The translations under genes and the position numbers were made by a program. From Pelomyxa schiedti (lineage: Eukaryota; Protista; Evosea), in assembly GCA_020536535.1 (NCBI GenBank), contig JAHLWZ010000238.1, forward strand, positions 1 to 54,903: a stretch of 54,903 nucleotides of DNA, read 5' to 3'. Below the pieces are notes generated by a model. That model was not told the DNA's origin. It ran no database searches and was given only the letters and a program-made list of their open reading frames with translations. Of this stretch, positions 21,442-26,428 are shown piece after piece (the stretch's first letter is position 1; every line of letters starts with the position of its first letter).

Positions 21442-21644
21442 GAATGCGGGAAGAATGACGTGTCTTGTGTACCTTTAGACGGGACACCATTCGCCCCAGT
21501 TCAACTTCACCACACCATCCCTACATGTTTTTCTCAGCACTTTGTTCTCATTGCACACATGCCTACCGTGTATTTTTGGCAATGAAAATGTTGTTGTGGT
21601 AATGTTTCCTCTAGGAAAAGAAAAAAATAATGGAATCTATTGGA

Positions 21645-24600
21645 TTAGAACAGAGCGAAACGTGTTCCGACATTCTTTGAGAGTGTTGGGGACTGGTCAC
21701 CATTGGAAAGAGACTGAACCATCAGCATAGTATCATCAATAATGTCACTGAACGATGTACCTGGCACTGCCCTTTCAGCAACTGCAAAACATGTCAGTGA
21801 TGAGTGTAAGACACAGGAAGTGAGGTGGAAGGAAACCTTCAAGGAAGCACCCAGTGAAGAACCCATTATGTTTCCGGTTTGGCAATTTACATGCATCCAA
21901 CGTTGTCTTCCCTGTTTGATTGTTACTTTTGGAAACAATGATTCTGAACTGTGAAACCAGGGCTTGTTGGGTAAATCACAATGCATCCAGCAGGGAAATC
22001 CTCCTTTGTTAGATGCATTCCGGTTGATCCAAATCCACGTGTCTGTGTGATTGGTGGTCAGGTAGTCTGCCCGATTTCATTTGATAACGCTTTATCTTTT
22101 ATGAGGGGAATAGATGGGGTGCGTTGTAACATAATAAGTCAAGCGGTAGGAGAAACCCTTAATTCATCAGAGTCATCGGGGTCAGCTGAACGGCAAGCAT
22201 CCAGGATCCCAATTGTGAGGTCCGAGTGTTTCTTGATCCCATCCAGCACATCTCCCAGCATTGGTGCTTTGGATTTCATGAGATAGAAGTTGGTTTCAGT
22301 GAATGCCGAGCCATCGGCGGTCATGATGAGGAAGTTGTGACCTTTGAGTTGCCTCCCGTGTCCAGCAAAGTAAAACACACTTGCAACCTGGTGATGAAGT
22401 GAGTGCGCGCTTTCGAGAACGCAATAAATAACAAGGTACCTTGTTTCTTGCTTTCTTTTGTTCTTTCAGTGTCGATTTGAATAACTCCAGACTTATCGCG
22501 AACTCTTGGAGATTGTGGATATTTGTCTGCACAACAACTTCAAAACGGCAGGTGTTCTTCAAGAACTGACAAGGAGAAACAAGAATTAGTGTTATTAAAA
22601 GAAATGTGTGAATGTAACCTTAGCAACACAGTCCCCATCATTGATAGTATTTTTGAGAGAAAACTGCCCATAAGCTTCATTGCTAACAATGAATGCGAAA
22701 CACTTGTAGCCCATCTCACTGCAGAGGGATCTTGCTCCTCCTGGGTCCACAGTGAGTTTTGTTGCGAGGAAAACCAAAAACCTATTTGCTGTGCCAGCAA
22801 TTCTGTTGTGGGCTCTATGCATTTGCTGAGATGTGAGAGCATAATTAGCCAACAGTAAAAGAATATAAGTGAACCTGGTGTGTTGTAGCTGTTGCTGACT
22901 CTCCAAAATTGAGTGTACTTCATCAATAATGAATGAAGCATCTCCAAATGCAAACCCAAGGTCGCACAGTTGCTCTTTGGTGCAATTGGCAAGTGTTCTC
23001 CCCCGTAACTTGTTGAGTCTGATGCGCTTTAGACAGTCATCATCAGCGCCAACAGAGCCAAGCCATGAGCACACTTGTTCAATGTCAGCTGAATTAATCG
23101 GAAATGGCTGTAGTGGTTGTTGTGGTTGTGGTTTAGGTTGCTCTTGTGGTGGTTCTGGTTCTGGCTGTGTGTGGGTCTGTGGCTGTGGCTGCGGTTGCAC
23201 CTGTGTTTCTGGTAGTGTCTGAGTTTGTGTTTGTGTTTGCGGTTGCGGTTGCGTTTGCGTTTGTGGCTGTGTTTGCGGTTGCGTTTGCGGTTGCAGTTGC
23301 GGTTGCGTTTGCGGTTGTGTTTGCGGTTGCGTTTGCGGTTGCAGTTGCGGTTGCGTTTGCGGTTGCAGTTGCGGTTGCGTTTGCGGTTGCAGTTGCGGTT
23401 GCGTTTGCGGTTGCAGTTGCGGTTGCGGTTGCGTCTGTGGCTGTGTGTGCGGTTGTGTTTGCGGTTGCGGTTGCGGCTGTGGCTGTAAATGAGGCTGTGC
23501 CTGCTGGGTCGGAGTATCTGTATCAATAAGAACTGAGTGGGATTCAGAACTTGTCTCTGGGCTTTTCAAAAATGCCTCTGATTCTTGTGGTGCAACTGGA
23601 AGAGGTGTTGGGAGTGTTGTCTGCCTCACATCTGGATGTGGAGATGGTAATTTTGGTGCCGCTATGGATGGCTTTGCCGCCATTTCCTGTAGAACGGGAC
23701 TATAAGAGGAATTATTTTTCAAAGGAGTTTCTGGTTCTGGAAGAATTCTTCCTTTAAGAGCAAGCGCCAAAGTAAGGTAAAACGCCTCGGTGATGTCAAT
23801 GAACTCATTGCGGACAACCTCATAGTTGTCAAAGGTATCTTTGACAAGTATTTTCTCATTCTGAAGCTTTGGAAGCCACCTCAAGTCCAAAGAACCTAAG
23901 TTCACAGAATCTCTAGGAACGGGAATTCCATTGACTCCAGACATCACAGAAATCTGAGGGAGATAGCTGTGAGAGGTCAGAGTCATATTCAGTGGAGTAA
24001 AGTAGTGCACAAATTTCCACCCAGGAACTGCTGCTTGAATGGCTTCATAAAAAATATACACAAACCAAGGTGCCAAACCACTGTAACGCTCTCCACTTGG
24101 TGTGGGGAATGAATCCTGCTGTGCAGTCATAGCATCAGTCAAAGCCTCCGGGCGTGGCATCATTGCAGCCAAATTAGAGAATGAACTGCGGATGTTCATT
24201 GCCATGAATGTGCTGCTGATCAGGTCCGCACAAATAACACTTCTCAAGGTCACCACCAAAGAACCGTCTTCAATATCCCGGGGCTTGTATCCATCAACAA
24301 AGACAACGGCAATGCAAAGTGAAGCGGATGGCTGTATGTTGTTCACACTAGTTTGGTCCAGTCCCACCTTCTTTTTTGCTAAATCATATGTTGGCTCTTC
24401 CCCTAGATCCAGCACAGCAACTGCGAAGTCAAACTCCTTGCTTTTATTCCAGTTGTGCCCAGTTGCACTTCTCCCCTCATTTGAAGTGGTGCAACTTTTG
24501 TCAGCAGGAGAATCAATATCAGTCTCTGGCACAACAACCCTTTTGACGAATTTTATACCAGAAGCCCTAATGAACAACTCCACAAGGAGTGCATAAGGAG

Positions 24601-24866
24601 CCAGTCGCAGGGGAAAGCACACACATCCACGGTCATCAGCTATACGTCTCTTAAAGTTACTTTTTTTAGCTGCTGCACCCCGTGTTTGCTGTGTTGATAC
24701 AGTTGCTGCTGATGCTGATGCTGATGCTGATGCTGATGCTGATGCTGGTGAGGGTGTTGATATTGGTGTGGGTGTTGATATTGGTGTTGATGTTAGTTTT
24801 AGTTTTGGTGTTGGCGTTGGTGTTGGTGTTGGTGTTGGTGTTGGTGTTGGTGTTGGTGTTGGTGTT

Positions 24867-24902
<36 letters not shown>

Positions 24903-25519
24903 TTGAAGTATCGAGTTTTATTGATTAGCAACTCGCATATTGCTTTATAACCCTTTTTTGTTGCAATATCAAGGGCAGTTTGACCTCTGAGCAACTTTTT
25001 GGTCTTGATATTGACATTGATTCCAGGAGCACCGAGCAACTTCTTTACAATGTCAGTCCTGCCCAGATCACACGCCACATGAAGAGGTGTTTTACCCTCA
25101 TGATCTCTTGATGTCGACACAGCATTCACATCCACGCGCGGGCACTCCAGCATCTCAGCAACAACATCTCTTTCATCACAAAGGCAAGCCACGTGAAGTG
25201 GCCAGTCCTTATTCACGTCCACTGCACTGTTCCTCACCAGTATCCTCACGATGTTAGGAAAACCACACCTACATGCTACACTCAGTGGTGTGTGGCCCAG
25301 GCTTGTGGTTGCGTTTGGGTCTATTGGAGGCTGTCGCGGCGGCGCCCCAACTTGCAGCAGTTGACTCACCAAGGCAGCGCGGTTGCTTTCAACAGCGACG
25401 TGCAACATGGTTTTGCCGTCGCTGGTGGAAGTGTTTATGTCCCATGGCGGTGGTGGAATAGAAGGCATGCGACCGACCGTGCATGCTCCAAACATCTCGG
25501 TAGATAGTGTCGTCTTCAT
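21645..25519 (-). CDS. Ankyrin repeats + PT and PQ low-complexity linkers + SAM domain + peptidase C14 caspase-like domain
   Basis: About 5 ANK repeats (GKTMLHVAV, GHTPLSVAC, GKTPLHVAC, GQTALDIA); SAM (EQVCSWLGSVG...LRGRTLANCTKEQLCDLG); after introns AFIVSNEAY..LKNTINDG, FYFAGHG, ILDACR, IYPTSPG, NGFFT, GDQSP. Confidence 0.85.
23226..23490 (-). repeat. Tandem 6/24-nt repeat encoding (PQTQPQLQ)n
   Basis: Repeated gcggttgcagttgcggttgcgttt units. Confidence 0.9.
24807..24901 (-). repeat. Hexamer tandem repeat (ggtgtt/ggtgtc) encoding (PT)n
   Basis: Directly visible. Confidence 0.9.
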
Positions 25520-26428
25520 TCAACGCCCTCCACCTTTTTTCAGAAAAAATTGTTTTTTGCAATCGATTTTTCTGGCTCCAAGCCACACTCCTGACCTCGC
25601 CTGAGCACCATGCCTTCCCAAGGGGAGAGGGGACAAGCAGGGGACCGGCCACCCCTTCCCACCTCACTTCTCGGCACCCCTCCCGTCCAAGCCTTTTCTT
25701 TTTTTTGTTGCCCCCACACCCCCCAGCTTGTTTTTCTTCCTCCACCCACCTCATTTTTTTTCCTCCCCACCCCCAGCTGTTTTTTTTTTTTTTTTGCCCC
25801 ACAAGCAGCCCCCACTTTTTTTTTTGTTTTTTTTGTTTTGGCTACCTCACGTTGCTCCTTGTGTTTCTGTCGAGCACCTTCTAGTGATTTTCTTCTTGGT
25901 TGTGTTGTGCGCAGGTAGGTTTTTGGTGGACGGGATGACTTTAACCTTTCTCTTCCTATATCCCATTTGTTGTTGCACCGACTCGCCGCACAGCCAACGG
26001 CACCACCGGTGACATACCACCTGCCCTTCAAATTCGTTTTTTAGACTGAAAAAGCCTGGGCACGAAACCAGCATAACCGGTTTTTTTTTTCGTTGAGGAT
26101 GGAAGAAGAGACCGGATTCAGATAGTACAACCAATAGTAAGCTCCTTCGACAACACGTTGGGCCTTTGGTCCGAACAGAGGCCTCCCAGCTCTAAAACCC
26201 TGCACACAAGTTTCGGGAAAAAATTGTTTTATCAGATTCGCCCCAAATTGGCGTTCTGTCTCACCCCTTCCTCTTTTTTCCACAAAAGCGAATTTTTGGG
26301 TCATGGCGGAACCCATACCGCGGATCCTGAGCGACGATAACGAAAATGACAGCGTTCTGGTCTGTTATTTATTCGAAATAACCAAATGGAAGAAAAAAAC
26401 CGTGTGCACAACATAGTTAGCATTTTTT

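Follow-up and report, generated by a model that had tools for sequence, protein, structure and literature searches.

A spliced ankyrin–SAM–caspase-like protease gene of Pelomyxa schiedti and its multi-domain family

We describe here a caspase-like protease gene of Pelomyxa schiedti, an anaerobic archamoeba whose genes carry ~7 introns each, 98% of them GT-AG (PMC8887013). The gene lies on the minus strand, between positions 25519 and 21645, of contig JAHLWZ010000238.1 (assembly GCA_020536535.1; C238 in our own numbering); the whole of this contig, 54,903 nucleotides, is the stretch of DNA that was analysed, and is called ‘the window’ throughout. An initial annotation, made from the sequence of the window, had proposed N-terminal ankyrin repeats, an unassigned globular region of about 300 aa, a SAM (sterile alpha motif) domain and an intron-split C14 peptidase at this position, set out as ‘sensor’, ‘polymeriser’ and ‘effector’. 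All four elements can be recognised, the unassigned region (here ‘X’) measuring ~310 aa, and the gene is real, spliced and expressed.

An eight-exon model was built from the three-frame translation and from annotated paralogues (numbered P0001 and upwards); its coding sequence is a multiple of three in length, and all seven introns, of 41-114 nt, are GT..AG:

21645-25519, minus strand: whole gene, eight exons, coding sequence of 3465 nt (1154 aa plus stop), ATG at 25519
22875-25519, minus strand: exon 1, 2645 nt, carrying ankyrin repeats, linkers, X and SAM in a single open frame
24920-25405, minus strand: ~5 ankyrin repeats, aa 39-200 (Pfam Ank_2 1.1e-31; Ank 2.1e-25, in 5 stretches; Ank_3 1.6e-24)
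24704-24901, minus strand: low-complexity linker of (TP)16 and (AS)n coding repeats
23720-24652, minus strand: X domain, aa 290-600, ~310 aa, between the TP/AS and PQ linkers
23108-23509, minus strand: PQ/TQ-rich low-complexity linker, aa ~671-804
22910-23104, minus strand: SAM domain, aa ~806-870, with a Pfam hit at aa 810-856
22826-22874, minus strand: intron 1, 49 nt, GT..AG, deduced from frame logic and the P0001 junction
22782-22825, minus strand: exon 2, 44 nt, linker, KCIEPTTELLAQQI, matching ‘IEATKDMQPQLM’ of P0001
22741-22781, minus strand: intron 2, 41 nt, RNA joint 22739/22781 (cut +1)
22619-22740, minus strand: exon 3, start of the C14 domain, KCFAFIVSNEAYG...NTINDGD
22637-22639, minus strand: Asp aligned to MALT1 Asp365, in exon 3
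22566-22618, minus strand: intron 3, 53 nt, deduced
22440-22565, minus strand: exon 4, FLKNTCRFEVVVQ...KKARNK
22388-22439, minus strand: intron 4, 52 nt, spliced joint in RNA
22157-22387, minus strand: exon 5, the catalytic exon, with one RNA contig covering 22157-22385
22358-22360, minus strand: catalytic His, in FYFAGHG of exon 5
22199-22201, minus strand: Asp aligned to MALT1 Asp462, in exon 5
22193-22195, minus strand: catalytic Cys, in ILDACR of exon 5
22043-22156, minus strand: intron 5, 114 nt, spliced joint in RNA
21958-22042, minus strand: exon 6, TRGFGSTGMHLTKEDFPAGCIVIYPTSP
21912-21957, minus strand: intron 6, 46 nt, spliced joint in RNA
21837-21911, minus strand: exon 7, KTTLDACKLPNRKHNGFFTGCFLE
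21895-21897, minus strand: Asp aligned to MALT1 Glu500, in exon 7
21782-21836, minus strand: intron 7, 55 nt, deduced
21645-21781, minus strand: exon 8, C-terminal helix and last strand, …SLSNGDQSPTLSKNVGTRFALF, then stop
exons 6, 7 and 8, minus strand: p10-like part, IVIYPTSPG / NGFFT / GDQSP

Exon 1 is contained in a minus-strand open frame of 974 aa (25519-22595), with an in-frame stop immediately 5' of the ATG at 25519. Splicing was followed in contigs of a single-cell RNA library, mapped to 21500-25700 (leaving out the repeats at 24695-24909) and compared with a DNA run. Four joints were observed, those of introns 2, 4, 5 and 6, each reading CT..AC on the plus strand and hence GT..AG on the strand of the gene, and all four are missing from the DNA run, which covers the gene region at 98% of sampled words. 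As introns 4 and 5 are both seen spliced, the catalytic exon is joined in frame on either side, and the dyad is in frame in the spliced product. Further RNA contigs fall within exon 1, at 23554-23837, 24135-24361, 24514-24694 and 24910-25153.

The remaining introns follow from frame and homology. The observed 41-nt splice of intron 2 keeps the frame only if 3n+1 nucleotides are removed upstream, and a 49-nt intron 1 satisfies this (41+49=90); its removal would give ...QHT-S-KCIEPTTELLAQQIG-GARSLC..., parallel to ...QQISTDIEATKDMQPQLMGARSLC... in P0001. The deduced intron 7 junction reads ...GCFLE/VAERAVPGTSF..., in agreement with P0002 and P0004, and leads into an exon 8 tail that is 77% identical to P0004 and 86% to P0023. 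Saying this, no RNA contig in the single-cell library bridges exon 1 to exon 2, so that we infer continuity of the transcript from frame logic and the paralogues.

It might then be argued that the gene model is an artefact, in which the ANK-X-SAM and C14 exons belong to two adjacent transcription units or have been brought together by mis-assembly across the coding repeats. The missing RNA bridge would fit with this, as would the breaks of the DNA contigs at the TP/AS and PQ repeats, and the locus is without an annotated protein in protein searches (none was found in two word searches of protein sequences). Against this, the frame is open from the ATG to the exon 1 donor, the observed 41-nt splice requires the 49-nt one, the P0001 locus has the same exon pattern, and the paralogues carry their domains in the same order, with the X-SAM-C14 region of P0002 encoded to residue 602 in one stop-free open frame; coverage of the region by the DNA run points the same way. 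We regard an artefact of this kind as highly improbable, the least credible of the alternatives considered here. A smaller caution applies to the linkers: public DNA and RNA contigs break at the TP/AS linker, and DNA contigs fragment at 23288-23433 within the PQ/TQ linker, so the repeat lengths given by the assembly at 24704-24901 and 23108-23509 may be unreliable or variable.

The modules of exon 1 differ in how readily they are recognised. The N-terminal repeats are tandem 33-residue ankyrin repeats by the Pfam Ank models, as had been proposed, and aa 200-800 of the 974-aa frame are without Pfam hits. The SAM segment of the window gene, taken alone, falls under the Pfam cut-off (SAM_2, E 0.012, 16.2 bits against 20.5). 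It can, however, be aligned with the corresponding stretches of seven paralogues, and is 79% identical to that of P0001. Of the 60 matches that a family profile made from this alignment has in the PDB, 59 are to named SAM proteins (Liprin-beta1 best at 2.1e-9, then SHANK2/3, SAMD12, DGK-delta, SARM1, CNK2, polyhomeotic and tankyrase), and in P0013 the homologous segment is accepted by Pfam SAM_1 at 1.1e-14. On the strength of the profile matches and of P0013, we take the SAM domain to be confirmed at the level of sequence homology.

The C14 domain is spread over exons 3-8. Against PF00656, exon 5 alone scores 19.9 bits (E 6.3e-4), a six-frame read-through of the locus reaches 31.9 bits where the cut-off is 21.4, and the paralogues score 39-133 bits; exons of the window gene were searched singly, and whole-domain analyses used the annotated paralogues. 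Across ten paralogues the C14 domains are ~60% identical, with GHG and D-x-C-R invariant. Both catalytic residues of the window gene lie where the initial annotation had placed them, and its p10-like motifs can be assigned to exons 6, 7 and 8. One detail of that reading has to be corrected: the stretch given as ‘IVIYPTSPGFTVQ...’ runs into an intron, the true junction being ...TSPG/KTTLDACK.

The likeness to paracaspases and bacterial caspase-like proteins, rather than to metacaspases, that had been suggested for this protease is supported both by profiles and by predicted structure. A profile built from Pelomyxa C14 domains alone finds MALT1 at 8.7e-5 and metacaspase-1 at 0.14, and a joint Pelomyxa and bacterial profile matches MALT1 over the whole paracaspase domain at 9.6e-33 and caspase-1 at 3.9e-11, with no metacaspase among its best 60 matches. 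A single-sequence phmmer search of the PDB with a paralogue C14 domain gave no match, and profiles were therefore needed. For the fold we used P0004 as a stand-in, which is 67-92% identical to the window gene in exons 4-8 and 50% in exon 3. Its AlphaFold2 (AF2) model (pLDDT 88.8, pTM 0.87) has six main strands, with a disordered loop between the fourth and fifth and no inserted strands, and Foldseek places MALT1 chains best (E 1.8e-14, TM 0.74-0.79), followed by caspases 3/7/8/9 and CED-3; metacaspases are missing from the best 50-60 structural and profile matches. In paracaspases and caspases alike the sheet has six strands and dimerisation along beta6 activates the enzyme, whereas in metacaspases two extra strands block this interface (PMC4357240). 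The P0004 model shows, as a prediction, the six-stranded caspase/paracaspase fold, of a kind that can pair via its sheet edge.

The P1-Arg specificity of MALT1 rests on Asp365, Asp462 and Glu500 (PMC4357240), and HMMER alignments put Asp at all three positions in the Pelomyxa family; since the acidic S1 positions are matched in this way, cleavage after Arg is predicted for the window protease. We also note a near-invariant (D/E)EFRTRGFG at the exon 5/6 junction (22157-22170 and 22025-22042, minus strand). It falls in the loop that the model leaves disordered between strands four and five, where caspases have their inter-subunit linker, and is a candidate self-cleavage site for an Arg-specific protease. 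An RG(L/F) is also kept in the bacterial relatives.

MALT1 and the paracaspases (MEROPS C14B(P)) are the best profile and structural match of the Pelomyxa protein, which shares with them the six-stranded sheet, the DxCR cysteine motif and the acidic S1 triad, and which likewise carries an oligomerisation module ahead of the protease in one chain. It differs in that identity is ~19%, the Pelomyxa family being nearer to bacterial homologues, in that the family runs to at least 26 copies with varied N-termini, and in that SAM stands at the place of death domain (DD)/CARD-type assembly. The death domain and Ig domains of the type 1 paracaspase architecture are absent, Pfam finding only ANK, SAM and C14, and the protein is therefore paracaspase-like but not an orthologue of metazoan MALT1-type proteins. 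Type I/II metacaspases (C14B(M)) are marked by a sheet of eight strands, a DxCH motif, a p10 that binds Ca and has the 280-loop, and either a Pro/Zn-finger prodomain or a long linker. With them the Pelomyxa protein shares PF00656, the His-Cys dyad and, by prediction, basic P1 specificity; its cysteine motif, however, is DxCR (DACR) and not DxCH, and the P0004 model is without the extra strands beta7/beta8 that make metacaspases monomeric (PMC4357240).

When proteins of 137-437 aa were searched for relatives outside Pelomyxa, only ‘caspase family’ proteins of bacterial or metagenomic origin came up; these nearest relatives have ~30% identity over ~96% of the domain, with E down to 5.7e-24 in a database of 5.8e9 sequences. 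With this bacterial family (orthocaspases, p20-type, DxCR) the Pelomyxa domains share the motifs FYFAGHGxQ, ILDACR and QxPWxSxS...F.F, and fusions with TPR, Sel1, MORN and further modules are common among the bacterial proteins; those seen here lack SAM, however, and the Pelomyxa domains form a long-stemmed group of their own. The only NCBIfam match is to caspase, EACC1-associated type, at 26-35 bits, far under the cut-off of 140. No SAM-C14 relatives were found in other eukaryotes among proteins of 615-1956 aa (those of 437-615 aa, and fragmentary gene calls, lay outside the search).

The window gene is one of many. A search of the genome (a 52-Mb assembly of 5337 contigs) with the paralogues gives at least 26 loci with a catalytic exon, plus several further fragments, and some of these are locally clustered: three loci on C721, and two each on C933, C762 and C448. 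Annotated members end in SAM-C14, barring P0016, in which SAM was not detected, and some truncated models, and their N-terminal parts are of different kinds:

P0005, P0006, P0008 and P0015: N-terminal LRR_6 repeats
P0007 and P0010: N-terminal MORN
P0009: N-terminal Ras/Roc and TRAPPC13-like
P0011: N-terminal Sel1
P0012: N-terminal ANK and PARP_reg
P0013: N-terminal second, degenerate C14
P0001-P0004, P0014, P0016 and P0019: N-terminal X domain

By sequence, then, SAM-C14 is the constant end of the family and the N-terminal modules are exchanged. Divergence is also much faster in the N-terminal parts than in SAM-C14: compared with P0001, its nearest paralogue, the window gene shows 81-89% identity over exons 3-7 and 79% over SAM but only 48% over X, and P0001 has an unrelated coiled coil in place of the ankyrin repeats. 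Within the family, the ankyrin N-terminus together with the orphan X domain is specific to the window locus. In a tree of 132 C14 domains the 16 from Pelomyxa come together (SH-aLRT 100), a long stem setting them apart from the 116 bacterial or metagenomic ones, and this grouping indicates, as far as sequences can, one origin followed by expansion and N-terminal shuffling. A bacterial donor could not be named, the tree being unrooted with Pelomyxa on its long stem and all 116 others opposite. The ‘NLRC3/NOD3’ names attached to some paralogues reflect the LRR_6 repeats only.

Two members, P0002 (C100:773-2962) and P0003 (C2001), both X-SAM-C14 with an MGN... start, keep the catalytic His and have lost the Cys (LLDSFF), and are probably pseudo-proteases. 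That they nevertheless retain X, SAM and the fold lends something to the idea that the window protein is a non-catalytic scaffold or decoy, one that acts via SAM and ANK, for instance by regulating active paralogues, with its protease activity dispensable. The window gene itself, however, keeps His, Cys and all three S1 acids, and its C14 exons are 82-89% identical to those of P0001, in which the dyad is intact; we give this alternative very little credence. A different kind of degeneration is seen in P0013 (C694, ~52-57 kb), where a degenerate N-terminal C14 (SLFYFSGHG...VIVDCPRE) is followed by SAM and then by a standard C-terminal C14. In P0001, P0005 and P0012 the annotated C-termini depart from the family consensus after ‘...GFFTGCFLE’ or earlier, and the deposited models have probably missed the last short intron(s).

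X itself is conserved in at least 12 paralogues and present in about half of the family. It carries the motifs CxCFxPxxAPYAL, FDFAVAV, VHYFTP, PVPRDSVxLxSLDLxWL and FIDITEAFYLTLALAL, and its invariant positions include P19, Y217, G242, S249, W259 and D286 of the segment. A HMMER profile search of 1.84e9 representative proteins returns only eight, all with E<1e-30, of which four are annotated Pelomyxa proteins, and sequence profiles find no match in Pfam, PADLOC or the PDB; going by these searches, X is an orphan domain found only in Pelomyxa. Its AF2 model is mediocre (pLDDT 63, pTM 0.71): the N-half, a five-stranded alpha/beta arrangement, is of low confidence, the C-half is better, and no specific fold match for it emerged from Foldseek, from a VIA-wide comparison (best Z 4.5) or from an ESM-atlas shape search (TM<0.4), leaving X as a candidate new fold.

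A weak lead is a likeness to TIR domains: in a language-model feature search with the X of P0002, bacterial TIR clusters scored 0.85-0.87, below the 0.9 line, and PdTIR matches the X model at Z 3.5 amongst many flavodoxin-like folds. Pfam and PADLOC give X no match that would mark it as a TIR domain, and two language-model searches with X returned nothing reliable. That X might be a degenerate second caspase domain was ruled out by hhalign (probability 0.3%), and a GST/metaxin-like idea for the ‘PxVAPYALxVE..LR..GV’ motif was supported by no tool and was dropped.

Bringing these results together, we propose a model for how the window protein might work. We suggest that its 1154 aa make up, in a single chain, a cytosolic protease switch, ANK-X-SAM-C14, which is activated by induced proximity and has a role in a self/non-self or stress response; we lean towards this reading, by a modest degree of confidence. 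As a monomer the protease would be inactive. The N-terminal ankyrin repeats, perhaps along with X, would bind a partner or ligand, or set the location of the protein, and head-to-tail self-association of SAM would then raise the local concentration, such that protease domains could pair along beta6, the edge by which MALT1 and the initiator caspases do so, and then cut their targets after Arg. SAM would here fill the part played in animals by filaments of CARD, DD or DED.

The sensor/polymeriser/effector layout of the initial annotation is plausible. As architecture it has stood, and it gains weight because SAM-C14 is constant in at least 26 genes whose N-termini are LRR, MORN, Sel1, Ras, ANK or X; the ‘polymeriser’ is the part that sequence cannot settle, as polymerisation of a SAM domain is not something that can be read from it. 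Its nearest counterpart in outline is SARM1 (ARM-SAM-SAM-TIR), which likewise places an N-terminal helical-repeat regulator or sensor before a SAM oligomeriser and a C-terminal proximity-activated effector, and whose SAM is among the PDB matches of the Pelomyxa profile. The differences are that the Pelomyxa effector is a protease and not an NADase, and that the protein has one SAM and not two; any ring or filament would here be hypothetical. With the initiator caspases and the NLR/apoptosome platforms the likeness lies in the concept of sensor-driven assembly of a caspase-fold protease by induced proximity; the Pelomyxa protein differs in combining these functions in one polypeptide, without death-fold and without NACHT/NB-ARC, and in a P1 residue predicted to be Arg rather than Asp.

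With regard to cellular role, a self/non-self or stress response seems to us the most likely, because the N-termini are sensor-like in their diversity and the genes are locally clustered; the response could be one of defence, of control over prokaryotic endosymbionts, or of regulated death. Swapped repeat modules, clusters, pseudo-enzymes and faster N-terminal divergence together resemble, by analogy, the repertoires of immune receptors. P. schiedti lives with obligate bacterial and archaeal endosymbionts (PMC10579272), and these permanent prokaryotic symbionts make for a concrete biological question about the family.

A more far-reaching version of this proposal, to which we hold only tentatively and which we think on balance unlikely, is that the family amounts to an NTPase-free, innate-immune-like repertoire of ~26-30 one-protein receptors, in which varied N-terminal binders (ANK, LRR, MORN, Sel1, Ras, X) sense microbial, viral or endosymbiont cues and SAM filaments switch on a MALT1-like Arg-specific protease. 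In such a repertoire X could contribute a new fold, either for sensing ligands or as a second effector, perhaps with a distant likeness to TIR. If this were true, an amoeba with permanent prokaryotic symbionts would have invented, independently, a form of ‘signalling by cooperative assembly’ that acts upstream of a caspase-fold protease.

Several points weigh against the protease switch that we favour. Its mechanism, activation and cellular role are proposed from sequence and models, and the evidence for the fold comes from the paralogue P0004 and not from the joined product of the window gene. The RNA evidence is sparse, as the contigs come from one single-cell library and have a depth of 2-10, and exons 1 and 2 are unbridged in it. 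Some SAM domains simply mediate interactions or bind RNA, and proteins concerned with localisation or scaffolding are just as usual a place for MORN, Ras, Sel1 and ankyrin modules. Finally, Pfam detects no NTPase switch (NACHT, NB-ARC or AAA) in the window protein, and none of the NACHT/NB-ARC type in the nine paralogues scanned.

Our main rival explanation is that of a localised housekeeping or regulatory protease, in which the N-terminal modules place a constitutively regulated Arg-specific enzyme at membranes, cytoskeleton or complexes and SAM serves for docking, with no role in immunity or death. Of the retrieved family proteins, 11/23 start MG(N/A/G)xxx(S/T), an N-myristoylation consensus, which together with the MORN and Ras modules suggests membrane targeting, and Pfam reveals neither an NTPase nor any other known immune switch. 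Metacaspases and non-metazoan paracaspases, moreover, often have roles other than in death. Housekeeping proteases, on the other hand, rarely reach at least 26 copies with swapped modules, clusters and pseudo-enzymes, and the N-terminal parts evolve much faster than SAM-C14, such that we consider this explanation a serious one, less probable than the induced-proximity switch.

The MG-start N-termini are those listed for P0002, P0003, P0005, P0006, P0008, P0009, P0011, P0012, P0014, P0017, P0019 and P0020, and members that begin with X have a CCxC cluster within ~30 residues after the MG start, which could be a palmitoylation site. The window gene itself starts MKTTLST, outside the MG consensus, and no convincing upstream exon was found that would give it an N-myristoylated MG start like that of many paralogues.

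Animals are known to activate caspase-fold proteases by induced proximity, with death-fold platforms to assemble them, and the same is inferred for bacterial conflict systems. If SAM does drive activation in Pelomyxa, the family would represent a second, independent solution to the problem solved by CARD/DD filaments, and a tractable model for it, the SAM-C14 piece being ~400 aa in length. A review of the field restricts varied extra domains to prokaryotic orthocaspases, and describes the eukaryotic metacaspase-like p20 proteases outside animals as simple and single-domain (PMC5756287); the Pelomyxa family contradicts this picture, with multi-domain, bacterial/MALT1-like proteases of an amoebozoan placed behind SAM and interchangeable modules. 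A search of the literature found no paper on caspases in Pelomyxa, nor one that links the sterile alpha motif to para- or metacaspases.

Other C14 genes of the genome have Cys motifs more like those of animal caspases. One on C511 (41952-42630, minus strand; L002/L007) reads ‘ILVQACRGNG’, and another on the same contig (L001, 3452-4195, plus strand) reads ‘FVFDCCRG’ and is matched end to end by PF00656 at 9e-32; that an amoebozoan should have a caspase homologue of the QACRG type may be worth separate attention. Within the window, the convergent neighbour of the ANK-X-SAM-C14 gene (19930-21441, plus strand) is a 503-aa frame of divergent ankyrin-like repeats (Ank_2 1.4e-13), with no other domain and unrelated to that gene.

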